Origin: Utricularia gibba
Lineage: Eukaryota; Plantae; Magnoliophyta
Length of the DNA: 64,000 nt
Direction: 5' to 3'
Assembly: GCA_002189035.1 (NCBI GenBank)
Contig: NEEC01000015.1
Coordinates: 1 to 64,000, forward strand
Below, piece after piece: positions 20,901 to 52,402 of the stretch (position 1 is its first letter; every line of letters starts with the position of its first letter). The position numbers were made by a program, and so were the translations under genes. The notes beneath the pieces are model-generated. The model was not told where the DNA came from and searched no databases. It was given only the letters and a program-made list of their open reading frames with translations.

Positions 20901-22021
20901 ATTTGGACGAAGCTCCGTAAAGACAGAATGCTTTTCTTCTGGTGTACAATGCTTCACACAAGTCTGAAAATGAGTACAATTCAGCAACTTGTCTTGAAAT
21001 AGGGGAGTCAGATCATATAATCAGCATACAATAACAGGATAGAAAAGCAGAAGAACGATACCTGAAGAACACGAGAAGACACGTGTGAACATGCAATTTC
21101 AGATATCTTTCCCTTCATTTTGTTAAGTGCTTCACTTACTAACCTGTTAAAGGCAAATCCCGCTTACATTCTTCCTTCTTTTAGAGGAGGGGAGGGGTGG
21201 CATCAATCAAGGAAACCCTGGAAACTAATATACGACTAGTAAAGGTCTCAAGCGTCTACAAAAAAACATGCCTTGATCTGTCTTCTTTTGAAATGTTTCG
21301 ACGACGCATCCTCTCCCACAGCAAAGCAAGTTCCTAACAACCCCACATACGTAACTTTAGGCATCTGATACACACACATGCAAGTATTTAATACTCAAAA
21401 TCTGATATATTGTGCGAATTGAGATTAGCCATCTTCACAAACACTGATAAACAGACTAGCATAACTTCAACTGTAAACTAAAATCCACACAGAACTTTGA
21501 AAACCAAAAATAAACAAGAAATTGTAGCTCAATAAAATAAGGTAAAGAGATAACCTGTTCCAATGAGTAATGCTTTTTCCTCTTTTTTTTCCTAGCTTCC
21601 GCCAGCTCCTGAAAATGATATCAAACAACCGTAAGAAATTAAGCGGTGAATGGACACCCAGAAAATAAATTCTGCTGAGAAGGAACTTTGTCACCTCAAA
21701 AAGCGCGGCCTTCTTTCATCCATAAAAAATATAAAAACACAAGGAGCAATGACTGAAAGATCGAACCTTTGAACGTAAACGACCTAGCTTCTTAGCGCCC
21801 TCCACCTCATCTTGTTTCTTGCCGTGCGTCTGTGAGTCCTTTTTCTGAATATTAGGCACATTCTTCGTGTACACGCATCTGGAATCGCTGGAAGTAGATT
21901 GACTGTTGGTCGGATTGAAGTTTAATTTACGCTTCTTTGAAATAAATCCTCTTCCCTCAGATTCCTGCTTATGGAGTCTCCTCTTACTCGATTCTCTGCC
22001 TTTCTGGTTCACCGCCGCCAT
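17975..22021 (-). CDS. PUM24: Pumilio homolog 24 (Puf6/PUM3 family, CPL domain), ~17 exons
   Basis: Exons trace in frame: ELAEARKKKRKKHY, HVSSRVLQTCVKH, HMVGSLVIEHAY, LEQFHSSRAIRKLILEC, ALRGKCAFWCKGHS. One intron (21144-21271) has a GC donor. Confidence 0.95.
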
Positions 22022-22462
22022 TGATGGGCGTGATTTGATTTTGCGTTCCTCCCAGAGCGACGGTATCCAAAATATATATAGGGATTACATTGCTTAGCTG
22101 CCGGGCTTCCTGCGAAGCTGCCCAGGGCATAACTGGGCTCATGGACCATTCCTTTAAGGAGGGCCGTGTCTTTCGGACAAGGGCCGAGGGTCATTTGAAA
22201 TAACTTGATTTGGGGGTTCTCTGTAAATTACTTCCGGTTTCTGTTTTGCTTTTTGCGCCAAGCCGCAGCGGCTTGAATATGTCCATCAATGTCCCCGATG
22301 GCGATATTGCCGACCAACATAAACCCCCTAAAACCTTTTAGGGCATGTTTGGTAATTTGAATTAAAGTTATTGGAAATATTGGATGAATTTATAACCTAA
22401 GCCATCTATCTGAATATGTTCATCCTCCTCACAACTCCAAGGTCCAATATCCATGTGCTTCC

Positions 22463-22915
22463 TGTTGGGCTCAGCTAAGTAGTTCGTATTGGGCCAGAAT
22501 TACCTAGCTGAGACCCAAGTCAAGCTGATCCAAGACAGCAAGGTCCAAGTCAAACTACATGTTCTCAACTAACCGGAAATGGAGGGATAAGAAATTGTAA
22601 TAGACCCATGACCACGAAGGGGAGGGAGATAAGACAGCAGGGTTCTGGTTTTTTTGTTTAAATCACCGTTACGTAGATGAAGCAGATGAGAGCTTTGGTT
22701 TTCTCTTCTAGATTGCACATTGAAGAGCAACTAGATAGGGGTTTCTTCTTGCTGATCATATCTTGTATTGTGTATACAACACCTCTTTTAGTGGATTCCC
22801 GTAGTTCGGGGGGTGTGGCCCGAACCCAGGTTTTTCCCTTTACGGGTTTTCCTGGCTAAAAAGTTCTGGTGCATTTGTTTGATTCTGCATACACAAAACT
22901 GCACAAATCCCTACA
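22463..22915 (+). mobile_element. Solo LTR (453 bp) of an LTR retrotransposon
   Basis: TGTTG...CTACA termini with identical 5-bp flanks CTTCC (22458-22462, 22916-22920). Internal gtagttc...gccc-gaacc...gggttttcc block resembles plant LTRs. No internal coding region. Confidence 0.85.
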
Positions 22916-23844
22916 CTTCCTAGCCTAACCTCTAAATAGAAGCAGCACTTGTGAGCAGGTAAAAGCCTAAAAGCAGCAAGAAAACGTGCAGCAAATACCA
23001 ACATCATATTTTAATCGAACAGAGCACAGCACGAAACAGAAACTGTCACCCCAACTTTTCCAATACAACCGAAATTACATCCAAGAGGCTCCTCTCCACG
23101 AAAGCAATCTAAATTTCAGGGTTCAAAACTGAAGCTCAAAAGAGCCCACAGGGAGAGAATTGCATCACATGCTAAGAAGGGCCGGCCGGATAAAATGAGA
23201 CATTCCAACCCGAATCAGGTCAAGAACTTCTACGATGAACAAACATAAACAGAACAACAGAACCTAGACAAAGAAAGTGGAAAGCCCATATAAAAACACT
23301 ACCTAGACAGACATCGGAAAGACACAAAAGACAGAAGCTTACCGTTTTCAGGCAAGCAAGCTCCACGGCAGCATCTGAGGCCGCATCCAGCCGTGAAACG
23401 TCAAGAAATCATAGAATGATTCCAGGGTATACGAAGGCACTTCAGGGTGCGAAGGCGAAGGTGGCTTGACAAAGGACCTCGGCTTCTGCGACCATAATTG
23501 CTTTCCTTTACTGAAAGACTTTCCAGAATCAAAACGATATCGCGGATGGCTTACTATCATAGACCTCAGATTTGTGTTACCGTGGACGACGGAGGGGAGA
23601 GAATTAGTAGTCCACGCTTGAAATCATCACGTCGGTTGGGTCCCGAAAGCCTCTTTGTCGACTAGGGATTCCAGCTACACAGGATCATATTACCAGGTAC
23701 GCAATACTAATATATATTCGTTTTGTTTTTCTAGGCCGTTGATTTTCGTGGTTGTGTTGCGCCACTTGAGCGAACGTCTGCCCTTCCCTCAATCGATGTT
23801 ATTCGCCCTCCGTTTTCTCTGTGCGAAGGACGGTTGCTGCTTCT

Positions 23845-25727
23845 ATGGCGGTCAAGAAGGTTCTGCAGGGAATCTCCAAGGGGATGCTGGAAGAAGTCCA
23901 CCGATTTGGGGCCATGAAACAAAATGGCGTCAGCCTTCGCTATATGTTGGAATTCGGCTCCCGGCCTACCCCCGGAATCTTCTGATTGCTTCACAGTTTC
24001 TTCACAAGGAGTTGCCCATCAGGATCGCGCGACGTGCTATTGAACTCGAATCTCTCCCTTATGGCTTGTCCCAAAAGTCCGCCGTTTTGAAGGTCTTGTC
24101 AATTTTTTTCCGGAATTAATGGCCCTGGATTCTTCCTTCTAGCATGTGATGTGTTCATATTTGTAGTACAACAGAAAGGGCGAGGGTGCCTACTTTTCTT
24201 CCTGGGTAGATGGATGGCCTTGGATTTCCTTCGTTCTAGCATGTAATTTTGACACGCTGAAGATAGTTAATTTGCTGCTCTTATTGTAATTTTTATGTCT
24301 TTTTCTTTCTTTCTCTCTCTGAACAGTCTGGTCAGTTGAATTGATGCATTTCCTGCTTCTTCATTAGCTAATGCGTGTGTAAAGGTAGCTGAATCCTCTT
24401 AATGGGAAGGGAGTAGGATAGTTTAAGGATAGCTGCCTGCATGTATCTGAATTCTTGCCGCATGATATTTCTTGTACAGGTGAAAGACTGGTACTTGGAA
24501 TCCTTCCGCGAGCTTAGGAGCTTTCCGGATATTAAAGATAATGCTGACGAGCTGGAATTCACAGAGATGATTAAAAGGATTAAAGTTAGACATAATAACG
24601 TGGTTCCTATGATGGCCTTAGGAGTTCAGCAGTTGAAGAAGGATCTCAATCCCAAACTTGTTTATGGAGACTTGAGTGAAATTCATGAGTTTTTAGATCG
24701 ATTTTATATGTCCAGAATTGGGATTCGCATGCTCATCGGTTTCTCCCTTTTCCACTTCTACACTGCCATAAATGCCTTACATTTCTTGTGTGGCTGGAAG
24801 TTGCATGCTTCTCATTAGCATAACAATGGTATGCTAAACTAGTATTTTCTTGTGAACTCAGGGCAACATGTTGCGTTGCACGATCCAAATCCGCCCCCTG
24901 ATTGTGTAGGGTATATCCATACAAAAATGTCACCGGTGGAGGTTGCAAGATCTGCGAGTGAAGATGCTCGGGCTATTTGCCTGCGTCGATATGGAAGTTC
25001 GCCCGACGTTCGTATTTATGGCGATCCCGAGTTCACGTTTCCGTGAGTGATATATTACTTGTTTTTTCTCCTTTGTTATTGCAGCTTCCGTGGTCGTGGC
25101 TTATGTTACTTCCATTATGGGCAGTTATGTGCCTTCACACTTGCATTTAATGGTGTATGAGTTGGTTAAAAACTCACTTCGAGCTGTTGAAGAAAAATTT
25201 ATGAACTCGGACAAGGTTACTCCTCCTGTCCGGATTATAGTTGCCGATGGGCTGGAGGATGTCACCATAAAGGCTGGCTTTCGCATCAACCCTTCCCGTC
25301 ACATTTCTTTTCTGCAATGTAAACTAGTTTTTAAATCCCAACTTTTGTTTCTGTTGTAGATATCTGACGAAGGGGGTGGCATTCCTAGAAGTGGCCTTCC
25401 GAGGATCTTCACTTACCTCTACAGTACAGCAAATAACCCTCTGAATGAAGTCTCTGAAGATGACATCGAAACATCCATGACAATGGCTGGTTATGGATAT
25501 GGCCTTCCCATAAGCCGCTTGTATGCAAGATATTTTGGTGGGGATCTGCAGATTATATCCATGGAAGGATATGGTAACTTGATCCTCCCGAATCCTCACA
25601 CTTTCGGGAGGGACTCGTAACCCTTTTCCCCTGCGGCTGCGTCGCTCAGTTTTTGCTTGTGGTTGCAGGTACAGATGCTTACCTTCATTTGTCGAGGCTG
25701 GGAGACTCCAAGGAGCCGCTTCCTTGA
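23845..25727 (+). CDS. PDK: Mitochondrial pyruvate dehydrogenase kinase, 6 exons
   Basis: [99 protein letters not shown]. One C missing at 23969-23973 (likely error). GC-AG intron 25273-25359. Confidence 0.97.
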
Positions 25728-26565
25728 AATATTCAAGGCGATCCAGGCGTGCTAGTTGCCCCCACCCTGTATGGGGTTGTTTCACGACCCATCCATCACC
25801 GAGATAAAATAAAAGGAAAGACGCAGGTTTGTTGTGAACAGCCGCCGTGTCCTGGTCTTCCTTCCCGGAGAGTGTCACAATTCGTACCTCATTTCTGATG
25901 TCTCAAATCTCATGGAGCCTAGGCATTTTTTCAGCGTTCCATCTACAATTGAGAGTGGAGGGTACCCACGACAGGCCTTGACAGGCGAAAAGCAGAAGCA
26001 CAGCCGAGAAGAGTGACCAGGTGGCACCTGATCTTAGGCTTGGGTATAATGGTATCAAGAAACACAAAGACCCATCCTTTCCTGAAATCCTTCCCCTGAA
26101 GCCAGGGGTTGGATTGCATTGGGGTTTTTAGCCATGTTTGAAATTTGAATCATTGAATTTTGATTTAAAAAATCATTTGGATTGCCAGTTTTATGACGAA
26201 GAAACTGCTACTGACTGGCATGTCCTAACGGCATTTGATGTCCACTTCCTTCGACCGTCCTCCTCTTTGGCTTATCAATCAAATGAATGATTCTACCTCT
26301 CCCCTGCGCAGCCCTGTTGCTTCACATTTTTGAATTTGAAATTTTGCCGGCTGCTGGTGCGGATTTGGGATTTGGACACTGGGAAAAGATGGAAAGAAAG
26401 GGACTCATATTTGGCTGGGTTTTGTTCTGTTTTGAAGGAAGTTTCTGTAATCGTATCTGTATTGTTCATTTGTTTGTATGCTAGCACTTCCCTTGGTTGT
26501 TCAATTGTTTTATACAGGCATACCAGGGCACCCAAACAACAACGAGGCTACTTGTCAAGAGGCAA

Positions 26566-27300
26566 CTAATCCCTTCGTCGATGTCGTCTTCTCTTTCTTC
26601 CATTGCTGGTCTCTGCAATGGTTTCCAGCTTGGGTCTCCAAGTGGGGCGCATCCCCACGAGCAGGTCGTGTTCCCGCCGTAAACGTGGAGTCGTGCAAAT
26701 TCTGGTGCTCGATAACACCTCTTCCGCTTGTTCGCTGCTGGTATCAATGCTCTCCTTGATCCGCAGCTTTCCAGAAGGTGTCAGCTCCACCTGGAAATTT
26801 GGCATACACCGAATGAAGGTGACGAAGGAGACGGCGGACTGGGAGAAGACTGCCGGCAGGAGAAAGTAGCATTGCCCCTTCCGAAGACGGTGGTCGCCGG
26901 GAAGGGCAGGGGCTTTTTGGCCTATGAAGAAGCAGTCTGAGAGGCAGACCATGTGCTTGGGGAAATCTTCCATCACCTCCCAAACCTTCACCGCTCGCTC
27001 GTAGATATTAACTCCACCGTCGCAATTTATCAGCCGGATCACGTCACCCGTCTCAGACGGCGGGGGTGCATGCAAGCGATGAGGTGGAACAAAGGACGGG
27101 ATGAAAGGGCGATCCGCATCATCTTCATCTTCTTCAGGTTCATGTTGAAGAGTTGTTGTTTTAGTCGTAGAAGACAGGAGGCGCACAATGCATTGACAGG
27201 CGGAGCACAGTGTAAAAAAACTTGGACTCACATGCGTATATATGCTGCTGATGCATGCATCGGAGAGGGAATGGCATAGCAGACCGTCAACACAAAACAT
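26566..27300 (-). CDS. DUF4228 / PADRE-domain protein (start uncertain)
   Basis: VIRLINCDGGV..YERAVKVWEVMEDFPKHMVCLSDCFFIG..L..GQCYFLLP, C-terminal WRPKLETIAE. The canonical MGN start is not seen. Confidence 0.8.
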   Translation of the reverse strand: MFCVDGLLCHSLSDACISSIYTHVSPSFFTLCSACQCIVRLLSSTTKTTTLQHEPEEDEDDADRPFIPSFVPPHRLHAPPPSETGDVIRLINCDGGVNIYERAVKVWEVMEDFPKHMVCLSDCFFIGQKAPALPGDHRLRKGQCYFLLPAVFSQSAVSFVTFIRCMPNFQVELTPSGKLRIKESIDTSSEQAEEVLSSTRICTTPRLRREHDLLVGMRPTWRPKLETIAETSNGRKRRRHRRRD

Positions 27301-28014
27301 GGTGATAAGTCAGAGCTTGGTCAAATGAAAAGAAAAGAAAACACAAGAATAAGAATAAAAAGCTTCATACAATATAATTAATTGTAGGGAAAATATTCCA
27401 AAATATTATCTTGTTTACAGAATTAATAGTAACTATATTGTTTAAAAATCAAATCAAATTTCATTCATAAATAATGATTAAATTAAATCCCGTCATACCT
27501 AGAATCAGCAAATTCTTATTGAAATTCAATAAAAGTGGCTGGCTTGCACTTTGACTGGTAATGAGGAGCAGCAGCGTCGGATTGTGGACTCAGCAGGCCG
27601 GGGTGGGCCCACTGTGTGCGACTGCTGACGGGCTTTTCCATTCCTTTGGGTTGGGGCACGGACCCGCCCACTCCTTATATTTTACCTACCCACTTGCTAT
27701 TTATTCCTTCGGCTGTCGTACGTCACACGAAAGGGAGGACCGTACATTGTTCTTTTTTGGGCACGGTAAAATATAACTCATGAGTAACGTGTTGTTATTC
27801 ACTTCTTTGGTTTCCCATTCACGAAACCCGGGCTTTTAGATGGCTCTATCACTTGACATTCTTATTTACTTATGTTAGTTTCCCATCGAACAACTCTCGG
27901 CATGGTGTCCTTCCTTAACTCACCCTTACGCCGTGTACCGAGATTGTGATATCTTACCGTTGCTTCGGTTCGGTAACTAACAAATGTGCTCGCTCGCTCG
28001 CTCATTTAATGAAG

Positions 28015-28183
28015 CATCTGGAGATGCCCTGCACATTCATGGCACCAACTCGGTTGTGTCTGAGAGAGTGACAGCGAGAGAGCGAGTGCAGGTAAAAACA
28101 TCTGGAGATGCCCTGCAGATTCATGGCATTAACTCGGTTGTGTCTGAGAGAGTGACAGCGAGAGAGCGAGTGCAGGTAAAAAC
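28015..28183 (+). repeat. Two-copy tandem repeat, 84-bp unit
   Basis: catctggagatgccctgca...gagtgcaggtaaaaa starting at 28015 and 28099, with 3 mismatches. Confidence 0.95.
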
Positions 28184-28214
28184 GATTCATGATTTATCTT
28201 CTTTTCCCAGTATA

Positions 28215-28284
28215 TGCCAAGAATTCACCTGTGTTTACAGTTTTCACTCTGCCAAGAATTCACCTGTGTTTACAGTTTTCACTC
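28215..28284 (+). repeat. Two-copy perfect tandem repeat, 35-bp unit
   Basis: tgccaagaattcacctgtgtttacagttttcactc starting at 28215 and 28250. Confidence 0.95.
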
Positions 28285-28306
28285 CCCAACCCAAAGCCAT
28301 TCCAGC

Positions 28307-30775: not shown

Positions 30776-31523
30776 AGCCCAGAAATATCTCCGATCTGTA
30801 TTGAGGAACAAGAGTAAGGTTTGCTTCCAAGTTTGGGTTTCTATGAATTCTGCAGGGTTTTCATTTGATAATACCCCCAGAGTCGCTGTTTTTGTCCAAA
30901 TTCGGCTAGCCAAGTCCTTCACCTGTTTCTTGAGGCACTTACTATCGTGCGCAGCGGACTCGGCTGCCGGCCACGGGAGGGGTCCAGTGCAGGACGCCGA
31001 CCGGTGCGCCTCCCGAGTCAAGTTCCGTTGCAAAACAAACTTTTGATCGAGCTACTGGCTTGGGCTGCGCGAGTAGCCCAGTGGGCCTCCAAAACCACTT
31101 CATGGACATCGGTCGGTTGTAGGAAAGAAAAACGAGAAACTCGACGAGGAATAGAGCAATTGTTTGCACTTGCGAGAGAACATGAGAAATTCTCCATTAG
31201 AATTATTAAATTCCTGATGAAAACAAGAATTGATTGTATTCTATCATTCAATAATATTTAATAGATTGCTTCATGAGCAACAGTAGGGGCTGGAGCAGGA
31301 AACTCATTTCTTGTGCAAGTTGTTGATTCGGGTTTGGAGCAAGAACTCCTTTGAGCTCGTTATCAGCAGAAAGTTCGTCGATTCAACTAAACAACTTTAC
31401 TTCCTGTGTCCTCTGCAGAAAGTTCAGAATTTTTCTTCATTGAGTTTCATAAAAAAAAAACAGTAATTTTGGAAATAAGAATAACAAAATAATCATCTCT
31501 TCTTGCTCGTCCACTATTGCTCA

Positions 31524-33033
<1,510 letters not shown>

Positions 33034-33304
33034 TGTTGTTGTGCTGCTAGCACGGCAGCAGTAGTTGAATGGAAGTGGCCGGCACTTGGAAGGTGCTGGG
33101 AATGTGGGATGGTGTTGCACTCAGTTTTGTAGTATCGGGTTCACACAATTGGATATGAAATAATATGACGTTGTAAAGGTTATCAGAATGGGGTGTGGGT
33201 GTGTATGGATGGAATGAAGGGGAATGGATCAGGTTTGGGAAGGGATGAGGTTTTGTGGACGAAGGAAGATTTGCTCATTGTGTGGCTGTGGTGTTCGGTG
33301 GATT

Positions 33305-33331
33305 GATGATGATGATGATGATGATGATGAT
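33305..33331 (+). repeat. (GAT)9 microsatellite in the GAPA upstream region
   Basis: Direct read. Confidence 0.95.
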
Positions 33332-35208: not shown

Positions 35209-38185
35209 TCAGATCTCATATGTCATGCCCACACGAAGAAGCCTATCTCGAGGTATAGCCAGAGTCTGATCTGCTTGACGGAAATTCTTCCTCAGGAAGT
35301 GGTATGCTTTGTTGATCACAAATTTCCTGAAGAAATTCGAATTATGATGTGCTACCACCTCCGTTTCTCCGATCAGGTAGAACACGCCGCTCTCCATTGC
35401 TCTCTGCAAAAACTCGATTTCCTGCTCCATGTTTTGCTTGTTGTTCTGACTGATGATGTGGACTTCACCGTTGGAGGAGGATGAGCTTCTAGCTCCAGGT
35501 GCTTGCTGTTCCAAGGTCTCTGGCGTCACATCGGTAGTGCTTTGTTCTGACTCGAGCATGTAAGCCTCATTGCGAATGAAGGATTTCAGCTTCTCGACAA
35601 GCTGGATCTCGAATTCACGTGGCTCAATGATGTCATTGTATCCGTACCTGGCCACACATCGGAAAACTCTGTATTCCTTTGGCTCCACCTGCCGGAGAAG
35701 GAATCGCTCCTCCGGCAAAACCTTGCTAATGGAGATCGGCTTTACAGAGACAAGAACGATAACAGAGTGCACTGAAGGTACATTGCGAACGAAGTGAGGG
35801 AAGATGGGAGGTATCCCTTGAACGAGCTCCGAGTAAAGAAGTCCAATGCCTGGGATTCTGGTGATGCTTGCATCGTTAGCCAAGTCCTTGATGTAGTCGC
35901 CAGAAACCTTGTTCGAGAGTTCGTACAAGTATCGCTGTACATAGGTGTAATGCCAAATCCCCATGATCGTCATCAGGACTATGGAGAAGGCGAAGGAAAG
36001 GAAACCTCCATGAATGAACTTGAACAAAACTGAGGATAAGAATACTGCCTCTACGGAAAAGAGAAGGCCGAAGAACAGCAGGATCAGCCATATACTCGTC
36101 TTCCATATCACGAGCATGATGAGAGTGACCATGGAGGTGGTGATCAACATCACAGTAACAACAGCGATTCCTGGCAGAAGAAGTGTGTGGGTAAGTCACC
36201 CCCACAGTATAACAGGAGTGAATTTCAAAAGAAACATTACTCACCATAAGCATTTCCTATGCTTGTCGTGGTTTTAAACGCTAACGTCACAGCGATACAG
36301 GCAATCATGAGAAGGTAGTTGATTTCAGGGATGTAAACTTGGCCTTCATGCTTGGCGGAAGTGTGGACGACTTTTACTCTAGGAAAGCAACCCAGACTCA
36401 GGGATTGTGAGACTATAGAGAACGTGCCTGAGATCATTGCCTGGCTAGCTATAATGGACGCCATGACTGCGCTCACAAGCACGGGCCAGTAAATTGGATC
36501 TACCAGGCAACACACAAATTAGTAAGACTGGACCATGCATACCATGGGGAGGAACACACGGAAACAGTAAACGCTGTAGTGAATGATGTAACCTACTTGG
36601 TGTAGAGGCATAGAAGGTGTTGGCAACTTGTTCAGGGAACCTGGTTAGATAAGCACCTTGACCGATATACGCCAGGGATATTGCTGGGAAGACGACGGTC
36701 GAGAAACTTATTTGTATGGCAGGGACATTGAAATGGCCCAGATCCGCAAACATGGCTTCAGCTCCTGGTCCAAGTACAGGCGACGATGATCAATTCAATG
36801 GTAGTAGAAATACCAAAAGAAAACCAAGTTGTGTGTTAGTACTAGCCTGTGATGCAGAGAATGACGCCGCCTAGGGATACCCAGCCCTCCCTGCCGTTTC
36901 TCCTGAAATAATCGACGATGTACTTGGGATTGAAGGCACGCAGAACAGTGACATCGTATTTGAACAAGTTGTACACCCCGATTCCTCCTATGAAAGCAAA
37001 CCACACGGCGATCGCAGGAGCAAAGGCGTATCCAACTTTATCTGTCCCAAACCGTTGCATCCAGAAGAGAATGATCAATATGGCGGTCGCGATGTACACC
37101 TTTGACTCTGAGACAACAGCGACCGGATTCAGGAGGCAGTTTTATGAAGTATAAAATAAAAAGAAAAAGCCCGCTCGAGGGGATATAAAACTGTGGTTAC
37201 CCCCGTGAAGACCCTTCATTCCTTCGACGGCAGAGAGAACTGGAAGCAATGCGCAAAAGTCAAAATAAGAACCAAACCGACGTACCAAGGACAGAGAGAA
37301 CCACCATACTTTGTTTTCTTGTTTTTTTTTAAAAAAAAAAAAAACATGCCTGAGATGCTCGGTGTGAGAACACCATCTCCGATTACCATAGAAGTTCCTA
37401 GAATTGTGGCAACAAAGAGCACGATTTTGGCGGCATTACTGGACTCGAGCACCTTTTTTATTTTCTCCGATCGCCCAAGTCGAGATGATGGCACTTCTAG
37501 ATGATAATTTGACAGCTTTTTATCCTCCGGTTGTTGATTTGGTATAAGACTAACATTTGCGTATCGGCAGATTTTGGAGTAGAGGGCAAACGTTCCTCCT
37601 AAAGAAGGAGAGAAAAAAGGCATGAGCTTTTGTTCATCTGCGGTGTTACTATATAGCGCTAAAATAAAACAGATAAGTAGGCGTGCTGCATACCATCTCC
37701 CTTGTCGTTAGCCGCCAAGACGATGAGCACGTATTTGATCAAGGATATTAAGATCAAGGTGTAGAGAATGAGGGAGAGAACACCAAGTATATCGCTCCTG
37801 TGTTTGATCCCGTTTTGGAAGGTACTTGAATACACGTACAAGGGCGAGGTTCCAATGTCGCCGTAAATCACGCCAATGCTCTGAAATGCCAACTGCATCG
37901 TCGTCTGCCAGCTCGCCTATTCCATCCCAGTAAAATTATGTATGAAGGGGGGGGGGGGGGGGGGGGGGGGGACGGGTGGTCTCCTAGATAAAACGGGAGA
38001 GTTAAGAAGAGGGAGGTTTGACTCACCGGTGTTCCGGCATGATGCCCGTGAGCTGATGAAACCACTCCTGCCTCCACCTGAAGCGAGTCAAAACGGCGGA
38101 GCCGCCCCACTGAGCTCCTCCTCTGGGTAGTTACGGGAACCTCCTGATGGGAGGTCCTTGCCTGCAGAGCGTTGGCGTCGCCCAT
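35209..38185 (-). CDS. HAK5: KT/HAK/KUP potassium transporter, HAK5 clade, tandem copy 1 (8 exons)
   Basis: [82 protein letters not shown]. Confidence 0.97.
37947..37971 (+). repeat. G25 homopolymer in intron 1 of HAK copy 1
   Basis: Direct read; exact length unreliable. Confidence 0.9.
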
Positions 38186-39965
38186 TTTTTAAAAGTCACC
38201 GCTCCGCCACCTTTTGTTTGTGGTGTGTAGTCCAGTAGTGGAGTACATTTATAGAGGACGCGGCAAGGGCATCCCAGATACATGCATGACATGTGTACCT
38301 GAAAATGAAATCAAACTTGGCAAATTTCGATTTTTCATCCCATGGGCATTTTGAGTTGACCCAACATCTATCTAACAATAAAATATATGCATTACTAGTT
38401 TGTATCATGTATGTGAGATGAAAGATGAAGCACAATGTGCGCATGTATTGTTGCCGAGAAAGATGACACCACAGCTCCAGTGGGTAAAAATACGTGAAGT
38501 GGGATGTTTTATTTCAGTAGGGAAGGGGATGGGGAAGGGGAAGTTCTTCCAGAATTGAATTATCATTCTCTTTTTCTGGTGCCCTATCTGAAGGTAGGGC
38601 GGGGCGGGGAGGATGCCCGCCGTTGTAAAATATTTAAATGAAGGTCATGAGGTGACAGCTAGCTATTTTAAAATAAAATATATGTATAAAGCAAGAGTAC
38701 TTTTGGTTTGTGGTTAAAATACTGAATGGAACGTCATGCAACATGCTCGATGGAAGTCCGAGCGCATTCTGGAATCTGGATGGAGCCGGAGGGGAATGTG
38801 TATGATCCGGAGAGGATGTCAGGAGTGTTTTGGATAGTTGTGTGTATACGCCACGCCATACGCGAATGCAACAACAATAATGCGAGTAAAGAATCTGAAC
38901 TCACCAACGATCCTTTCTCATTATACTATACTAAAGCAGCTTTGACTTTCCAGTTAGGTAGGGTAGGGTAGGGGTAGGGTGCAAGCGCCACGTGTCACCA
39001 AGCAGCCTTGGTTTGTCAACGCGTAGCAGCTCTGCCCCGGATGCGACCTTTACTGCTTGGATCCTCCTAAGCGAGGGGCCGGGGAGGGGAGGGACGGACA
39101 TCGCCGCATCTGGCTTGGGTTGTCGGTGTTCGCTTCCCAAGTGGAGCCACAGTCATCCCATCCCATCCCGCCCATTTTTAAATTGAATTGTTGCCTGACA
39201 TGTGATCAAGTCCACGCCATTAATTAACTAATCGCAATTAACTAACACTAAACCCAGTGCCCATCCCAGATCGCCCCTCCCCTCCGCTACTGTATTGCGA
39301 CTTGTTTGTCTTACTCTTGTCCCACACAAACACAATCCCCCGTTTGGTTGGTATCGGTGCCACTCAGGAACACACGTCGTCCACCATCTCCGGCATACGA
39401 TTTAACCATGTTCGGAAAATCTGCACAGCAGACGACATAGTTCACAAACCCCATGTATGAATAATAAATAATTTGGGCGGACTAATTGCCCAAGAACCAG
39501 AACCAGAACCAGCACACCCACCCGGCAAGATCAGATCATCCAAGGCACCGCCCAACCTAATCTCATCCCCTGGTCCTCTTCTGTCCACGAGAATTCACTA
39601 TTTACCATCTATTTACATGAGCCGCGTCAGATCTTATCTATTTAGTATCGGATACCATGGCATGCATGGTCATGCTCCAAACCACACATGTGATGTAACT
39701 ATATTATTATATTGTTTCCGTGAAGAGCCAGCCCAGCCCAGCCCAGCCCTCTTGGCGGTTGACTATTAACTGTCATTTTCTCTCGTATCAACTTTCTTAA
39801 ATCTTGATGTCTGTGTCTGGCTGTGTGCCTTCATTAACAAAAGTCTTTGGAAGAGGTTTATTACTAGTTACTTGGTCATTCTGTTGGATCGGATGCAAGC
39901 ATGTGTTGGGCTGGGATGGGATAGGCTGGGCCGGGCCGGGCCGGGCCAGTCTTAGGGGTGTGGGA

Positions 39966-42874
39966 TCAAATTTCACAGGTCATGCCCACCCGAAGAAGCC
40001 TATCCCTGGGTATGGCCAGAGTCTGACCCGCTTGCCGGAAATTCCTTCGCAGGAAAGGGTACGCGTTGTTGATCATGAACCGACGTAGGAAGTTGGAATC
40101 GCGATGCGCCACCACCTCCGTCTCTCCGATCAGGTAGAACACCCCTTCCTCCATTGCTCTCTCCACAAATTCTATATCCTCTTCCTCCTCCTCCACCTTC
40201 TTTCGAATTCGCGGACTACTGTTGTCGTCCGTGGAGATTTCTGCTCCAACCACTTGTTCCTCCACATGAACCGCCGTAGAGTATGGCCTCACCACCAAAG
40301 AAGGATGTGGAGGACCTTCGATGCTCTGATGGTCCGAGTAGGGCATGAAATTGTCGTGACGGATGAAGGATTTTAGGCTTTCCATGAGCTGCATTTCGAA
40401 TTCCTGTGGCTCCTTAATGATATCATTGTATCCGTACCTAACCACACACCTGAAGACTCTGTATTCCTTGGGCTTCACCCGCCGGAAGAGGAATCGCTCC
40501 TCCGGCAGGACCTTGCTGATCGGGATGGACTTTATGGAGACCAGAATGATGATCGAGTGAACCGAGGGTATGTTGCGAACAAAATGGGGAAAGATCGGAG
40601 GTATCCCTTGCACCAGCTCCGAGTACAGAAGCCCGATGCCGGGGAATCTGGTGATGCGTTTGTCGTTGGCCAGCTCCTTCACGTAGTCACTAGAAACCTT
40701 GTGCTTGAGCTCATACAAGTAGCGCTGCCTGTTCGTATAATGCCAGATTACCATGACCGTCATCAGCACCACTGAAAAGCAGAGAGGAAGATAACCCCCT
40801 TCCACGAACTTGAACAGAACTGAAGAGAAGTAGGTCAACTCCACGGAAATGAGAACCAGGAAGAAGATAGCGATCAACCAGATGCTCGTCTTCCATATCA
40901 TGAGCATAATCAGAGTGAGCATCGAGGTTGTTATCAGCATCACGGCAACAACAGCAATTCCTGCAACACCAACAGGCAATTCATGTTTTTGTGTTGTCGA
41001 TGAGCACTAGCAAAGCAGCTGTGGTTGTGTACTACACCATAAGCGTTGCCGATATGGGTGGTGCTTCTGAAGGCTAAGGTCACTACAACACAGGCGATCA
41101 TGAGAAAGTGGTTGATTTCGGGGATGTAAACTTGGCCCCCGTACTTGGCGGATGTGTGTACAACTTTGACTCTAGGGAAGCAGCCGAGGCTAAGGGACTG
41201 AGAGATTATAGCGAAGGTGCCGGAGATCATTGCCTGGCTGGCTATGATAGACGCCACGACTGCTATGATAAACGTGGGCCAGTAAATTTGTCCTGCAAAC
41301 GCATTAAAAAAGGTGATTCCTTTAAGAAATTCAAGCCACCGAGTGAGTGGGGGGAGGAGCGGCAGAGAGTACTTGGCACAGAGGCATAAAAGGCGTTGCC
41401 AACATGGTCTGGGAATTTGGTGAGATATGAAGCCTGGCCAATGTAGGCGAGTGAGATTGCTGGCAAAACCATTCCTGTGAAACTTATTTGGACAGCGCGG
41501 ACATTGAAATGCCCCAGATCAGCAAACATGGCTTCGGTCCCTGCTTCAGGGAACAAGACGCAGTTAGGGCTTGCCAGCCAATGTTCGGCGGACAGAAGCT
41601 GAAGTTAAAACTACTGGCCTGTGATGCAGAGAACAACGCCTCCCAAAGATACCCATCCTTGTTTGCCGTTTCTTCTGAAGTAATCAAGTATGCACTTTGG
41701 ATTAAACGCGCGTAGAACGGTTGGATCGTACTTGACCCAGTTGTAGAAGCCAATCCCTCCTATGAAAGCAAACCACAAGCTGATCGCCGGCGCAAACGTG
41801 TATCCAACTTTGTCGGTTCCGAACCGTTGGCCACAGAACAGAAGGATCAATATGACTACGGAGATATAGACGGTGGATTCTGCAACAACAACACAATAAA
41901 AATAAAAAATAAAAACTTTGGCCTTTCTCGCAGTGTTGTGTCCATTTGTTCAGAGGGAATAACATCAACATGCTGTCACTCACCATTGCTTAGACCCCTG
42001 ATCCCATCGACCGCCGAAAGGACTGCATGAACAGCGAAACCACCATATAACATCTATCTGAGATAATCTTTCCATTGAAAAAATTTGACTGTTTAGGAAG
42101 CTTGCCTGAGATACTAGGCGTGAGAATACCATCTCCAATCACCATAGAGGTTCCTAAAATTGCACAAAGGAAGAGGATAACTTTAGCAAAACTGCTGGAC
42201 TCTAGTTGCTTTTTTATCTTCTCGGAGCGTCCAAGTCGAGATGACGGCACCTCCAGCTTATAATTCGACAGCTTTTTGTCCTCTGGTTGCTGATTTGGTG
42301 TGAGATTGACGTCCGCGTAACGACAAATTAAGGAGTACAACGCAAATGTTCCTCCTATGAAGCAAGGCGACTGCTTTTTATTCCCTTAGTAAGGATTCAA
42401 ATACTGTGCGATGAGAAAAAGGGCTGGCTGCATGCATACCATCACCGTTGTCGTTAGCCCACAAGACGATGAACACGTACTTGATCATAGGGATCAACAT
42501 GATAGTGTAGAGTATGAGGGAGAGAACCCCGAGTATATCGTCCTTGTCCTTGATTCCCTTTGAGAAGGTACTCGAATATACGTACAAGGGCGATGTTCCA
42601 ATGTCTCCGTAAATCACGCCGATGCTCTGGAACGCCAATTGCATCGTCGTTCTCCAGCTCGCCTGCCATACAGAGGGCTCCTTCAACCCAGATGATAAAT
42701 AAATATACACCACAACAACTCGTTAGAAGATTACCGAAACATTGACGTTGTGAGCGGCGTGCGTTGATGAGAACTTCCCAGCTTCAACGTGGAAGGAGTC
42801 GTCGAGGCGGCGGAGCGCGGTGCCTGGTGTCTGGTTGGTCTTTTCATCGAGGCTTACTTCATTCCCTCACCCAT
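39966..42874 (-). CDS. HAK5: HAK5-clade potassium transporter, tandem copy 2
   Basis: MGE(G)[16 protein letters not shown]; this start needs one extra G at 42864-42866. [37 protein letters not shown]. Confidence 0.95.
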
Positions 42875-43855
42875 TTTGATCTGGGCAAACGGCTGAGCAG
42901 TGCGGTTGCATTTTATAGGAAACTCGTGCAAATCTATAAGACGGATAGCTTCAATTCTGATGAATCCTTGTTGTACGTGTGGGTGACCATCAGCCACCAT
43001 TTCTTCTGAGGCGCATTCATGAATGCGTTGACCCGGGGCGACTGCAAGTAAATGGCTGGCTGTTTATAAATCCCCAGTTGGGTGATTTTGTTTCAATCCC
43101 AATAATCTCCATTTGATCCAAATGGTGGTTTGTTTTCATTATTTTCTCGGCCTAGAGTTTCATTGAATTTGCAATAGTGGGTCGTAGGGTTGATGAATTT
43201 TGTATTTTAAAATCGAGATCCATTATTCAACTGCTGGTATTTCCCCGGGTTCCCAAAAGGAACTTTTGGTAATGTGGGAAAAGGTTGCCACCAACCCAAC
43301 CCATAGGGATGACTAACGAGTCGGGTCTTCAACAGGGCGACAAGAAATGCAACTGCTGGATTGTGTTGTTCCCTCGGCAACGTCACTTGCATGCCAACAA
43401 GTCACATACTCTGGCTGAGTTGCACCTTCATTGGATTAATTTCCTGAGATAATAGAATTAAAAAAACCTGAAAATGTAATTAAATCTGAATTTTAATAAA
43501 TTTCATACTAAATATATATGCATATATTTTAGAATTATTATAAATATACAACCCTGCTACATATTTATGTATAAACCACGTCTACATATACTTTGTAACT
43601 ATTTATTTTTACATATGGATGCTGGTGCATAAATGATGTTCACGTGCTTATTTGAATTAAATCAACATGCAGTTGCACTATACATATATATGCACGTCTG
43701 TGGTCTAGTTGGTGTACAATTTGACTTGGTTGCACGAGCGTAGACAAGGGTGGCATGGGGTGTCCATTCAACCCTTTCCGTTGATGCTGAATCGTATCAA
43801 AACACCAACGTCTCCCCCCTTGCTCCCTGGTTCTAGCCGCTTGGTGGTGTGATTC

Positions 43856-44241
43856 TGTTGGACAGCAGACAGCATTGAAGCCAGCTCAGAGTTAAGTGGA
43901 CCAGATGCTTAGCTAGGCGGCTAGCTGAGGGTAGTGCAACACACCCCGGGCCCTGGAGCATGAGCAGGAGCATAGCAGCAAGGGTGCGTGCATTAGCATG
44001 ATTACATACATTATCAAGGCCACGAACTCACCCCACTTGCTGTGCTTCCTTTCTTGTCGCTGTCTTAGCTTTAAAACCAGTTTGTGTGTTGTGTCTTCTG
44101 TGCATTGAAGTCCTGTTTTATCAGTTGATCATGACTTGTTTCTTCTGAATCAAATTAGGATACAATCGCATCAGCAGAACTATATCTCAACCAAAGATAA
44201 GAAGCTAACTTTGCACAATCAGTGATTTCTTGGGTCCTACA
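43856..44241 (+). mobile_element. Solo LTR (386 bp) between HAK copies 3 and 2
   Basis: TGTTG...CTACA termini with identical 5-bp flanks GATTC (43851-43855, 44242-44246). Confidence 0.82.
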
Positions 44242-44385
44242 GATTCAAGCGTGTACCATGAGGGGGCTATTGCACCCCTCGCTTGCTTTAAATATATCTC
44301 TACTGTAACAAATGGTCATGTAGGGATGGATGGGTGCTTCATACACACTTCTGGAGAGCCTGTTCCTATCAAGTGTTTTTGTTTT

Positions 44386-47039
44386 TTATATTTCATACGT
44401 CATTGCGACACGGAGAAGCCTATCTCGAGGTATAGCGAACACTTCGTCCGCTTTGCGAAAATTTCTGTGTAACAAGTTGTAAACCCTGTTGATCATCAAC
44501 TTCCTCAGAAGGCAGGAGTCCTCAACGGCTACCACCTCCACTTCCCCCATCAGGTAGAACACCCCTTGATCCATAGCCCTCTGCACGAACTCCACCTCTT
44601 TCTCCCCAAGGACGAACGATTTCAGCTTCTCCACTAGTTGCATCTCGAACTTGTCCGTCTCCTTTATCACATCCTTGTACCCGTATCTGATGATGCACTT
44701 GAAAACTCTGTCTTCTACCTGCTGGAAAGTGAATCGTTCATCTGCTGAAACCTTGCTCACCGGAAGCGATTTGATTGAGACCAGCACCGTCACGGAGTGA
44801 ATCGAGTGCATGTTACGAACAAAATGCGATAAAATCGGAGGTACGCCGTGAACCATCTCTGACAAGATGAGTCCGATGCCGGGAAGCCTGTTTATGGTAA
44901 CGTCCTTGGCCAGGTCATGGAAATAGTCGTCTGAAAACTTGTGTTTCAGCTCGTACGAGTAACGTTGACCGTACACGTAATGCCAGAGTCCCATCATCGT
45001 CATGAGTAACATGGAAAAGGCCAGAGGAAGGTAGCCACCCTCGACGAACTTGAATATGACAGACGAGAAGAATATGAGTTCTATGGATATGAAAACCAGG
45101 AAGAAGGAAAGGATCAGCCATATGCTAATTTTCCATATCAGGAGCATGATCAAAGCTGCCATGAAGGTTGTTAACATCATCACACCGACAACCGCAACAC
45201 CTGATGCATGAATGGCATTAGAAGAAGGTGGCAGAGACATTTTATAAGCATGACTTTTTTAGAGTTGTTATTACCATAGGCATTGCCGATGTTGGCGGTT
45301 GTCTTGAAGACTAGGGTTACTGCAACACACGCGATCATGAGGAAATAGTTGATTTCTGGGATGTAAATTTGGCCTCCGTACTTGGATGATGTGTGCACGA
45401 CCCTCATTCTCGGGAAGCAGCCGATGCAAAGTGTGTGAGAGACTATGGCAAAAGTGCTCGAGATCATTCCCTGGCTAGCAATGATGGCCGCAATAACCGC
45501 AATCACGAATGTCGGCCAGTAAATTTGATCTGCGAAGCGAATAACACTTGTTTATGTTTCATTTATCCTTCCATGGCATGAGAAAGTATGTTTTACCTGG
45601 TATGGAGGCGTAGAAGGTGTTGCTAACATGCTCAGGGAATTTGGCCAAGTATGCGCCTTGTCCGATGTAGGCAAGGGCTATAGCAGGAAAGACTATGGTT
45701 GAAAAGCTAATCTGGATAGCATGAACACTGAAATGGCTCAGACCAGCATACATGGCTTCAGTTCCTGATGGAGGGCTAAAAGTGTGAAAAAAAAGCTCAT
45801 TTCGTGGTAATGATAAACAGATAATTAGAAGCAACTGGCCTGTGACACAGAGAACCACTCCCCCTAGAGACATCCATCCATTTTTGCTGTTTCTTTTAAA
45901 GTAGTCAATCATATATTTGGGGTTGAAGGCACGTAAAACAGATACATCGTACTTGAATAAGTTGTACATGCCGATTCCTCCTACGAAGACGAGCCACAAG
46001 ATGATTGCGGGAGCAAATGTGTACCCGACTTTTTCAGTCCCAAAGCGTTGCACAGAAAAGAGAAGGATCAATATCATGATGGCCATATAGACCACGGAGT
46101 CTGCAATAAAAACAGGAATTCATGGATGCATCTCACTCCAGGAATAGTCATGTGTACATAGTTAGTTAGTTGGTTACCGCCGTGAAGACCTTTGATTCCA
46201 CCAACAGCAGAAAGAACTGGAATTCATTCATGAAACAGAAAGGCAAGGTGACTATCATGTCAAGGTTGAAGTGATTGTTAGAGTGTCGTGTTTGTAACTT
46301 GCCTGAGATACTGGGTGTAAGAATACCATCTCCAATAGCCATAGAAGTTCCCAATATCGCGCAAACGAACAGAAAGATTTTGGCAAAGCGACTGGACTCG
46401 AGCTTCCTCTTGATCATTTGGGACCTTCTTCCACATGAAGACACCTCAACCTCATAATCTGACAGTTTTTCACCGTCACCCAGCCGACTATTCGTCAGAC
46501 TAATGTTCGCGTGGCGGCAAATCTTCATATACAACGCTAGCGTTCCTCCTAAACGACAACAACGTGAGTAGTTTAGCAGGCCGAGTTGTTGGTGGGTGTC
46601 AAAAGATGGTACCTTCGCCGTTGTCGTTAGCCCACAGAACGATGAAGACGTATTTGATCATGGGAATGAAGATTATGGTGTAGATTATAAGCGACATGAC
46701 TCCGAGCACATCATTCTTGTCCTTGATCCCGTCTCTGAAGATGGTGGAATAGACGTACAGAGGCGAGGTTCCGATGTCGCCGTAGATCACCCCGACGCTC
46801 TGAAACGCCAGGAGCATTACTCTCAGCCATGTCTCCTCCTCATCCTGTTCAGTTAACACAAAAGGGTTCAATAGCCAGCCCAGTTTGAAAAGTAGCCGTT
46901 ATACGTGAAGCACGAAATGAATGGCCACCGGAGGAGAGGGACTGGGGTTGCTCCCGGTTTCCAAGTCCAGAGAGTGAACGACGCGTGGGCAGCAGCAGGA
47001 GAGTCTGGTTTGATGATCATCAGCCGTTTCTTCCTCCAT
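44386..47039 (-). CDS. HAK5: HAK5-clade potassium transporter, divergent tandem copy 3
   Basis: All 8 exons trace without stop or frameshift; [48 protein letters not shown]. Short C-terminal domain. Confidence 0.94.
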
Positions 47040-48372
47040 GGTTGTGGCGTGGCGGGGAAGAGGGATCTCTGTCTCTCCCCCTCATACACTGAAGTGTCCG
47101 TTTTATAGGCATGAAAAAGAAATGCAAAATCACAAATGTGTGCGCACGCTCTTTATTGTTACTAGGAATCTGGAGGGGCTCCCATGTCCCAAGTCCATCA
47201 GTAATCAATACCTTTCACAGAGATTCTACCGGAACTCGTTTGGATTTTATTTATTTTTTTGTTCATTCCCCCCTTTTTCGTCTTGACTCTAGGGTTTATT
47301 AAAGGAGTGTAGTGAGAGGATTAGGTTTTGAATTTGCTAACATGATTGAGGACGTATGGGGAGGAGGAAGGCACACAGAATTGTGCATTGTGAAGGGCAA
47401 TTTGGCAGCCCTGTTGGGGTGGGGCGTCACATAGTCGCGGGAAGTGTTTTGTTCGCGCAGCAAGTCGTATGTGTAATTAATTTGGCCGATAATGACACCT
47501 ATTTTGATTTTATGAATTTACACTGGGGGGCTTTTTAAGGCACTGCATTGGGGGACTGGTGGTGAGTTTCCAAATAAACTAATCCCACGACACCCTCTTG
47601 ACACCTTCTTGGTCTCCTGTCGCTCAAATAAAGTACTTCTTATTACAGTGGCCAGCGATAAATTTGGACCTCTCAAGTCTTAGGTTCCGGTTTCCATTGT
47701 AATAATATCAGACAAGCAGACGTTGGAATTGGATACAGTCCTCCACATGGTGGACTGGACTGCACTTTGGGGCTTTCACATTAAATCATCCGCATTGATG
47801 GATGGAAATGCAGAGCAACAAGGGTCAAAACAATTTCCTACTCATGCCAAAAAGCTTTAACTTCCTACAGGAAATTCCTTGGAGAACTCCAGAGGCAACG
47901 CATCGCTTTGATGCGAGTGCACGTTCGGAATGAGATTGTATACGCGGTTTGTATTGCCGTTTGCCAAGACTGCAATGAATAACATGGATAGATATCCATT
48001 CCTTAGTATTATTCAGTCATCACCTGTGCTTTATATGTTGCGGCTGCAACTCAGCTCAAGCAAACTCGCGATTTATGAAACGAAACAGGTAGGATCGTAT
48101 GAATGGCACAAAAAGTCAGCAATTAAAGTTAAACCAGATGAAAGGCTGAAATGCACCCCACCACTCCCATGATTTGCAAAAGAACGTACCCAATTCGATG
48201 TAACAAATGAAGTTGAAGTCGAGCAACCCCAAACAGCGGCATTCTGATAACAAAATAATAAAAAATCCAAATGTCAACACAGCGGGAGTCACATCCTAGC
48301 TAAAAAACAGAAAATAGAAATCAAACTTTGGCTTCAGGCAGTTCATAGAACCGAGATCAGGCCAACGCTCAG

Positions 48373-48948
<576 letters not shown>

Positions 48949-49005
48949 CTTCGTTCACAGCCAACGTGAACCCCAGTTGATTGCGGATTGCACAGTCAAG
49001 ATGGG

Positions 49006-49116
49006 AAACCCTAGGGTTTTTTTTCGTGCATAGCGAGCCCGTTCGGCAGTATGGTTTTTTTTATACCCGAATTTTATTCATATGGGCCTGTATTTGTTTG
49101 ATCCAAATAAAGCCCA
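49006..49116. promoter_or_regulatory. Palindromic telo-box plus site II motifs in the RPS27/CYP51 divergent promoter
   Basis: AAACCCTAGGGTTT 49006-49019 (telo-box on both strands), TGGGCC 49083-49088, AGCCCA 49111-49116. This combination is typical of plant ribosomal-protein promoters. Confidence 0.8.
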
Positions 49117-49380
49117 AATTTATTTCCTTTCCGACCCACTGGAATTCTTTGGCAATTGCCACCGGCTGGATGTGAATGGATATGGACTGTGGTCCAGGCA
49201 CACGTATCCTTTACAGCTCAACTATTTTGTTTCTTTTCGGCATCCAAGCCAGAATTTGTAGGGTTCTTTCCCTTCTCCAGAGACTGGTTGTGATCAACCC
49301 TTTTTTTTTTCCCATTTCATGAAAAACTTTTCATTCTTGATTTTCTGAATAACAGCTTGAATCGACGCTTTTCAGTGGCG

Positions 49381-50950
49381 ATGGAAGTGGTGGAGTCTTC
49401 TAATTCCAGCAACAAAATCTTGAATGCGGGTCTTTTACTCATTGCCACCCTTGTGGCCGCCAAATTGATATCTGTACTGGTACTGCCTAGATCGAAAAAG
49501 AGGCTGCCGCCGACGGTTGCTGGGTGGCCGATTCTTGGTGGTTTGATTCGGTTTCTGAAAGGACCTGTGGTGATGCTGAGGGAGGAATATCCCAAACTTG
49601 GTAGTGTATTCACGCTGAAACTGCTCAACAAAAACATAACTTTCTTGATTGGCCCAGAGGTGTCAGCCCATTTTTTCAAAGCCACGGAATCTGAGCTCAG
49701 CCAACAGGAGGTTTACCAATTCAATGTGCCGACTTTTGGCCCAGGGGTTGTGTTTGATGTGGACTACACCGTTCGTCAAGAGCAGTTTAGGTTCTTTACT
49801 GAGGCGCTGAGAGTTAATAAGCTCAAGGGTTATGTGGACCAGATGGTCATGGAAGCTGAGGTTATTCCTTATCAAGCCTGAGTGTTTAGTTCAAACCTAG
49901 TCATGTTTCTTCCACTCTTTTGATGCGCATTAATTCTTGTGGTGCTTTCAGGACCATTTCTCTAAGTGGGGTGGTAGCGGTGAAGTGGATCTGAAGTATG
50001 AATTGGAGCATTTGATCATTCTTACAGCCAGCAGATGTTTGTTGGGTGAAGAGGTCCGCAACAATCTATTTGAAGATGTCTCGGCTCTCTTCCATGACCT
50101 TGACAATGGGATGCTCCCAATCAGTGTCATTTTTCCTTACCTTCCGATCCCAGCTCATCATCGTCGTGATGCGGCCCGTAAAAAGCTTGCTCGCATATTT
50201 GAAAACATTATAGCATCTCGTAAGCAAACGGGCGAGGCTAAGAACGATTTGCTGCAATGCTTCATTGATTCCAAGTACAAGGATGGACGGTCCACTACGG
50301 AGGAAGAGGTCACTGGCCTGCTGATTGCTGCTCTCTTTGCTGGTCAACACACAAGTTCCATCACATCCACATGGTCTGGGGCTTACCTTCTATCCAACCC
50401 GAATTGCATGTCCGCCGTTTTGGATGAGCAAAAGAAAGTGATGGAGAGGCATGGAAATATCATTAATTATGATGTTTTGTCTGAGATGGAAATTCTCTAC
50501 CGTTGCATAAAAGAAGCTCTAAGACTTCACCCTCCACTGATAATGCTCCTGAGAAGCTCTCACAGTGATTTCAGTGTGAAAACTAGGGAAGGAGTAGAGT
50601 ACGACATCCCAAAGGGTCACATTGTGGCCACTTCTCCCGCTTTTGCCAATCGGCTGCCACATATCTACAAAGATCCAGACGCTTACGACCCTGACCGGTT
50701 TGCAGTCGGTAGAGAGGAAGACAAGGCAACTGGAGCTTTCTCCTACATATCCTTTGGTGGCGGTAGGCATGGATGTCTGGGGGAGCCATTTGCATATCTA
50801 CAGATCAAAGCGATATGGAGCCATCTGCTGAGAAACTTCGATATGGAGCTTATTTCACCTTTTCCTGAGATCGATTGGAATGCCATGGTCGTTGGTGTGA
50901 AGGGGAAGGTGATGGTGAGGTACAAGCGCAAGGAGCTTGTCCTGAACTGA
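49381..50950 (+). CDS. CYP51G1: Obtusifoliol 14-alpha-demethylase, 2 exons
   Basis: YQFNVPTFGPGVVFDV, LFAGQHTSSIT, KEALRLHPP, heme motif FGGGRHGCLGE; intron 49861-49951. Confidence 0.98.
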
Positions 50951-51311
50951 AAAGGAAAAGGCTTTGTTAGAGTCCTGCACAGTTCGTAATGCCTGCTCTC
51001 TTGTTGATGTGTCAAGTCTTCAATTTTCTGTTCATGCCAATAGTTAATTGTTTGGAATCAGAAGTTCCCATTCCCAAGTCTCACTTTACAGTATAAATCA
51101 CTCAAACGATGCATAAACTATCATAATAAGTTACATCACGGAACACCTCAGATCCTCATTGACATAGACAAAGCCCTTTCTGCATTTCATGTTCTTTCCA
51201 CACAGATCTTCGACAAACTGCCTCATTTGCAAGGATGCTGCTTATCACCATGTCACTGAAATGTGTTGCTCTTTACGATTATAAAAATTATGCACAAGCC
51301 TTCTTCCCAAC

Positions 51312-52402
51312 CTAATCAAGATTCTGAGACGCTTGCTGCTCAATTTTTTGAATCAGGGCCTCTTTCTCATGCTGAGGCAGAGCATTGAAAATGAAGATCG
51401 ACTTATCTCCAATGTCATCCTGTAACACAAGGAGAATCAGATGTAAGTTGGGAATCTGGGATCGAGTTATATATCAATAGGATCATGCCTTAATTGGCTG
51501 GGTGAACTTTCTCCCCGCAAACACAACAAACAATGCCGTCCACACACCTAGTAATGAAAGTTTCACGCCTTGGTCCATCAAACCTGTCTGCAAGTAATGA
51601 ATGTGTTTCACAAGATAAGGAAAACCTAGAGGCCAAGATCATAGTTCTAGTTTGTACCAGGTGACCGAGTAGAAGCGTTGGAATGATAAATGCTAATAAA
51701 GCAGCTTCTAACTTGCCATAGCAAAGCCCTATTGCAATACAGAGTCCAGATTCCATTTACAAAAGATGACTTCTCAATAATGAAGAGAAATTTGAATCAA
51801 GTCACAACGAAAAGAAAATGTATCTTGCCTTCCTTGAAAACCAGTCCAGTCAAAGCAGCAAAAAGTGGACCAACAAACCAAACAGTCGTCGGGTTCTCGA
51901 CGACATACTCCACCAAACCTTTACTCGCAGGATGAGCCAAAGCAGCATATGCTGCCAATGACCCAATGGCACCAATCGCCCAGAGCGCCTGAAGTGCACG
52001 CTTGATCTCGGTGACATAAATGTGAATCAGATAGAGAGAAAGCCCTAATCCACAGCCACCCAATCCGTATAACAAGTCTAAATTTCTGGAGATCAAATCA
52101 ATGACTTCGGAATCGCTATTCCTCAGGAAAGCTGCCGAAGAAGCGATCACAAACGAGGTGGCCGCAGTCACGAGTCCAGAACGGTAAAGTATGACTTCCT
52201 GAATATCGGACTGTTCGACGCTCCAAGGACCGTACACGCCTTGGTAGACAGCAGAGGTAGACTCCGGGGACTGTCCCACCGCCTGGAACTTCACCGAACG
52301 ACGTGAAGCACGATAGTTCCGGAGGGTAACGGGAGGCAAAATGGGCCTGTGGAAAAGACACTTGTGGAGGCATGAGGGAGGAACGAATGTGAGCGTCGTC
52401 AT
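51312..52402 (-). CDS. DUF2301 plastid integral membrane protein (At1g28140-like), 4 exons
   Basis: YQGVYGPWSV..EVILYRSGLVTAA, LIHIYVTEIKRALQALWAIG, FKEG|LCYGKLEA, GRKFTQPIK|DDIGDKSIF. Two GC-AG introns. Confidence 0.92.

Follow-up and report, generated by a model that had tools for sequence, protein, structure and literature searches.

GC-AG introns at unusually high density, and of derived origin, in a 64-kb window of the Utricularia gibba genome

The GT dinucleotide at the start of an intron is among the most constant signals of eukaryotic genes. We describe here a stretch of the Utricularia gibba genome (the first 64,000 nucleotides of contig NEEC01000015.1, referred to throughout as the window) in which this signal is replaced by GC in an unusually large number of introns. 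The window is gene-dense, with introns of ~65-130 nt and proteins closest to those of Lamiales, at 70-78% identity. The introns that start with GC and end with AG lie in a PUM24-like gene, in the gene for pyruvate dehydrogenase kinase (PDK), in three tandem HAK genes (HAK1-3), in the gene for the ribosomal protein RPS27 (eS27) and in a DUF2301 gene. Their coordinates and donor sequences are collected in Table 1, where, as in the text, a slash marks a splice junction.

An earlier note, made from the sequence of the window alone, had listed 11 such introns, with the claims that conserved protein junctions force a GC donor in every one of them and that they represent seven independent sites. Read on the strand assigned to it, each of the 11 intervals has GC at its start and AG at its end, and the presence of GC-AG introns in the window is thus confirmed. 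The GC-AG borders are solid for 10 of the 11 introns, and so are six of the seven independent sites (two in DUF2301, one each in RPS27 and PDK, two in HAK); the PUM24 intron is also frame-compatible with a GT donor, and is kept here as a candidate only. RNA contigs, from runs including X1, X5, X6 and X10, were compared with positions 46100-52099; they confirm the removal from messenger RNA of both DUF2301 introns (three runs) and, via a near-identical copy, of the RPS27 intron. These are ordinary U2-type GC-AG introns, present at an unusually high density: a U12-type origin is ruled out by the lack of an ATCCTT donor box in any of the GC donors.

In DUF2301 two GC-AG introns flank an ordinary GT-AG intron that serves as internal control. 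Contigs from runs X1, X6 and X10 join position 51418 to 51488 and position 51727 to 51828, skipping exactly 69 and 100 nt. The placement of these joints has 3 nt of freedom, within which the sole standard border is CT..GC on the plus strand (GC..AG on the gene strand) and no GT..AG placement exists. The spliced coding sequence yields a complete protein of 283 amino acids, with junctions LVFKE/G and QPIK/DD. Logan contigs 76-79% identical to DUF2301 were also considered, and were set aside as belonging to other Lamiales families and not to close relatives.

In RPS27 the junction FFM/DVK and the 29-nt micro-exon that follows it are part of an exon structure that is identical in Musa and Erythranthe; the exon after the micro-exon begins with TTVFSH. 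The junction is present in contigs of runs X5 and X10 that cover the 5' exons, whose synonymous differences from the window point to a paralogue or another allele as their source, and the last exon of the window locus itself is covered without mismatch in X1. There is no GT near the GC donor. The RPS27 gene (48041-48866) has in addition an intron in its 3' untranslated region (48244-48326), 46 nt past the stop codon. Downstream of it, on the minus strand, the stretch 47703-48219 is transcribed and contains a 220-nt GT-AG intron (47970-48189) seen only in run X1; this stretch may be a further untranslated exon of RPS27 or a separate transcript.

For PDK the exons on the two sides of the intron align without gaps to residues 226-273 and 274-340 of human PDK4 (chain 2zkj_A), and the in-frame GT alternatives would remove conserved residues, for example VTIK. 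The three HAK genes form a HAK5-type tandem triplet (35209-47039), which is old and specific to the lineage of the window. Seven introns, corresponding to those of a HAK gene from Salix, are present in each copy, and in each copy the same two of them, designated here as sites a and b, have a GC donor; at these sites the best junctions of every copy are those with zero length difference, at the intron positions and phase of Salix. Since HAK1-3 form a single clade (support 96/94), the six HAK donors are to be counted as two old GT>GC changes. The divergence of the copies at fourfold degenerate sites is 0.72-1.17; both changes thus predate an old triplication and have been retained in all copies ever since. 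The earlier note had described the changes as substitutions common to paralogues, for which indel-type assembly errors would not account. Because both sites are GC in three diverged paralogues, assembly error is ruled out, and it is made further implausible by the fact that it would have had to strike position +2 of 11 donors.

Table 1. Positions of the GC-AG introns of the window and of the features associated with them.
Feature	Position	Strand	Junction	Remarks
PUM24-like gene, candidate GC-AG intron	21144..21271	-	CAAG/GCATGT...AACAG	GC..AG ends, frame kept
PDK, GC-AG intron	25273..25359	+	AAAG/GCTGGC	protein continuity
HAK1 intron 5 (site a)	36765..36846	-	ACAG/GCTAGT	after ...GGVILCIT; zero length difference to Salix HAK
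HAK1 intron 3 (site b)	37240..37349	-	TCAG/GCATGT	after ...GVLTPSIS
HAK2 site a	41541..41618	-	ACAG/GCCAGT	
HAK2 site b	42023..42105	-	TCAG/GCAAGC	
HAK3 site a	45765..45839	-	ACAG/GCCAGT	
HAK3 site b	46217..46302	-	TCAG/GCAAGT	
RPS27 (eS27) micro-exon, 29 nt	48640..48668	-		next after the GC-AG intron
RPS27 (eS27) GC-AG intron	48669..48763	-	CATG/GCAATC	after ...SPNSFFM; conserved structure and RNA of near-identical copy
DUF2301 intron 3	51420..51488	-	TAAG/GCATGA	after ...TQPIK; spliced contigs X1, X6, X10
DUF2301 intron 2	51588..51657	-		ordinary GT-AG, internal control; contig joint 51587>51658, CT..AC on + strand
DUF2301 intron 1	51729..51828	-	GAAG/GCAAGA	after ...LVFKE(G); spliced contigs X1, X6, X10

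Other features of the window lie nearer to its start. Positions 1-426 are telomere repeats, in which CCCTAAA is mixed with CCCTGAA and CCTGAA units, and a PsaD-like gene that is apparently intronless (1361-1975) is found less than 1 kb from this array. Two tandem pectin methylesterase genes follow on the minus strand (10032-15212), both interrupted by a single GT-AG intron where one is usually found; the intron of the first gene is in frame and free of stop codons, such that the open reading frame reads through it.

The ancestral state of the donors was studied by mapping orthologous proteins exactly onto the DNA of relatives (Genlisea aurea, Erythranthe, Populus, Salix and Musa). This comparison covers five of the independent sites, two in DUF2301, one in RPS27 and two in HAK; PDK and PUM24 lie outside it. 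In DUF2301, G. aurea, Erythranthe and Populus have a GT donor at both sites. The RPS27 intron starts as ATG/GTAA, ATG/GTAT or ATG/GTGA in Erythranthe and at five loci of the Musa group. At HAK site a, at the same position and phase, the donor is ACAG/GTGCGA in Salix and CACAG/GTTGGT in G. aurea (gene 2), and at site b it is TCAG/GTTCGA in Salix and TCAG/GTTCGT in G. aurea (gene 2). The gene trees place the window gene as sister to that of G. aurea both for DUF2301 (support 82/87) and for HAK (support 82/70). Because the relatives carry GT at all five comparable sites, the GC state is derived in the lineage of the window and not ancient: an orthologous GC-AG intron was found at none of the five in the relatives compared. 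The sites were therefore not already GC across angiosperms, and the suggestion of a change at the level of the lineage is supported.

A GC donor has also arisen in G. aurea. Its HAK gene 2 contains a GC-AG intron of its own (CCAG/GCAAGT, L015:6849-6921, contig KE530136.1), in phase 1 after NTFYAATP, where reading through would meet a TGA; the same position is GT in the three HAK copies of the window and in Salix. This gain is thus independent of those in the window lineage. Among introns of G. aurea sampled regardless of state one in 10 is GC-AG (P = 0.11), a count that is only suggestive of an excess. The same contig also holds a tandem HAK pair.

We turn now to the density of these introns. 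In a survey of 121 plant species GC-AG introns are close to 1.2% of all introns almost everywhere (PMC6310983), in agreement with the figure of about 1% in model plants from which the excess in the window had originally been judged. In the window the share of GC donors is about one intron in ten, on the manual total of the earlier note. With a baseline of 1.2%, the probability of at least six independent GC-AG sites is 0.0005 if the window has 82 introns, 0.001 if it has 97, 0.01 if it has 150, and 0.045 in the extreme case of 213.

The donors themselves have a distinctive composition. Scored against the consensus CAG/G.AAGT, the GC donors match on average 5.6 of 7 positions. The corresponding value is 3.8 of 7 for the verified GT donors, of which there are 16; by the Mann-Whitney test the difference has P = 0.00014, or P = 0.0035 when paralogues are collapsed. 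A G is found at position -1 in 11 of 11 GC donors, and an A at position -2 in 10 of 11. Such a strong flanking consensus fits recognition by an ordinary U1, in which the rest of the site compensates for the C, rather than by a re-tuned U1; as a pattern of sequence it argues against a re-tuned U1, without excluding one.

On balance, the explanation that we consider probable, with moderate confidence, is that these are ordinary U2-type GC-AG introns in which T>C at donor position +2 has been repeatedly fixed under weakened selection. The change would have occurred in a fast-evolving, very compact Lamiales genome, and would be tolerated at those 5' splice sites whose other positions form good pairs with a standard U1 (AG/GC..G.); once fixed, GC donors would persist for long. 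The likeliest cause would be that selection against GC donors at +2 has been modestly relaxed, in a nearly neutral shift. A lower effective population size, a high rate of substitution, or the intron-defined splicing of tiny introns may lie behind it. No new machinery would be required. By rough population-genetic arithmetic, if the scaled selection coefficient were about halved, the equilibrium fraction of GC donors would rise from 1.2% to ~8%, and the high substitution rate of the family would let this new equilibrium be approached quickly.

A different possibility is a lineage-specific change of the splicing machinery itself, such that GC is read nearly as well as GT, for example through a U1 isoform with a G opposite position +2, or through U1-C, LUC7 or U6. 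The excess of GC donors is indeed both large and derived, there have been GC gains in both of the Lentibulariaceae lineages sampled, and compact animal genomes provide a precedent (PMC7072748). Within DUF2301, moreover, two of three donors have flipped, vs only two of 10 ancestral T silent sites that changed to C. We nevertheless regard a change of machinery as unlikely, in view of the finding that the GC donors still need an above-average match to standard U1, which is the classical signature of an ordinary U1 with compensation. There is also no small nuclear RNA gene in the window, as an Rfam scan of it gave no family above threshold.

T>C at +2 could also be driven by gene conversion with a GC bias, or by mutation pressure in that direction, most strongly near a recombining chromosome end. 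The window does start at a telomere. The GC content at third codon positions (GC3) of HAK is 0.60-0.67 in the window and 0.79 in G. aurea, vs 0.52 in Salix, and GC3 of Lentibulariaceae is above that of other eudicots; signs both of variable recombination and of biased conversion have been described in the G. aurea genome paper (PMC3728226). The silent sites, however, do not follow this direction. On the window lineage C>T occurred at five of seven silent sites of DUF2301 and T>C at only two of 10, small numbers in both cases, and C>T is frequent also at silent sites of HAK; no excess of AT>GC over GC>AT was found at the (few) silent sites of the two genes. In addition, G. aurea has the higher GC3 and yet carries GT at both DUF2301 and both HAK sites, and no gradient of GC content runs along the window from the telomere. 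Because the silent sites are not GC-biased, GC3 is below that of G. aurea and there is no gradient, we do not favour biased conversion at the chromosome end, and we judge this whole class of explanations to be decidedly unlikely.

Least probable of all, in our estimate, is a chance cluster in one window, with nothing lineage-wide behind it, helped by the counting of paralogues and by mis-traced junctions: the denominator does rest on a manual count, the PUM24 site is ambiguous, six of the 11 introns go back, through paralogy, to just two events, and P is only 0.045 with the extreme total of 213 introns, but six independent sites are solid, P is ~0.001 at the realistic total of 97, and all five sites tested are derived.

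Fixation of T>C at +2 under weakened selection must also be weighed against several points that speak against it. The intron total of ~97 (~82 with paralogues collapsed) is the unconfirmed manual count of the earlier note. The data come from one 64-kb window; the cause of the excess, its genome-wide extent and the reduced efficacy of selection are inferred. The junctions of PDK and of the six HAK introns have conservation of protein and exon structure as their only basis. HAK3 has the longest branch and is nearly silent: RNA from four runs covers hardly any of it, and none of its site b. At PUM24 a weak GT donor (TTTT/GTAGAC, at 21259), 12 nt downstream of the GC donor, also keeps the frame, at the cost of four extra residues (HVFL); neither of the short exons on its two sides had a match in the PDB. 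The genes compared with relatives were picked for carrying GC donors, hence the five derived sites out of five say nothing on rate. Finally, an annotation-based count for G. aurea gives only 0.8% of major non-canonical sites (PMC6310983 supplement), a low value that may reflect ab initio annotation or gene finders that accept GT only and miss GC donors.

These results can be placed beside what is known of GC-AG introns elsewhere. The introns of the window are members of the known plant class (PMC6310983), with which they share the GC and AG ends, normal splicing, a strong AG/GCAAGT-like consensus, and positions and phases in agreement with those of orthologues. They differ from it in density and in their recent origin. 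The density is ~6-9 times higher, with 6-7 independent sites in roughly 80-100 introns. As for the origin, plant GC-AG introns are often conserved, whereas none of the five testable sites of the window is common to the other angiosperms compared; in Arabidopsis thaliana, for example, 9,830 homologous positions of GC-AG sites show conservation, and 13,045 are aligned to GT-AG (PMC7072748). In the animals Oikopleura dioica and Eurytemora affinis ~10% of splice sites are minor non-canonical, with GA-AG more frequent than GC-AG, and a variant U1 isoform has been proposed (PMC7072748). The likeness lies in a shift of the donor dinucleotide at the level of a lineage, in the setting of a compact genome with very short introns; in the window, however, we deal with a plant, C and not A takes the second place, and the shift is known from one 64-kb stretch.

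The process envisaged here has a counterpart in mammals. Churbanov et al., in 2008, reportedly found that GC donors have built up gradually in mammals through GT>GC substitution. There, as in the window, T>C would have occurred at +2 of pre-existing introns and would have been tolerated at strong sites; the scale is far larger in the window, in a family of high substitution rate. High substitution rates are known for the bladderwort family (PMC5749785). In the literature searched there is no paper that ties GC-AG introns to Utricularia, Genlisea or Lentibulariaceae, and donor dinucleotides are not mentioned in the G. aurea genome paper (PMC3728226) or in the U. vulgaris transcriptome paper.

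It is unlikely, in our view, that the bladderwort family has shifted its 5' splice-site rules altogether, with GC at ~6-10% of donors across the genome, more than is known from any other land plant, as a result of a change in the machinery and not of drift. If this were true, the family would be the plant counterpart of Oikopleura and Eurytemora, and the reading of position +2 could be studied in it as in a natural system. If the several-fold excess of GC donors, all of them recent, is itself true, it would show how far the donor signal can drift under weak selection or in tiny introns. Gene finders that accept only GT would then mis-annotate a sizeable share of the genes in such genomes, and the lineage would serve as a natural experiment on how 5' splice sites are recognized.

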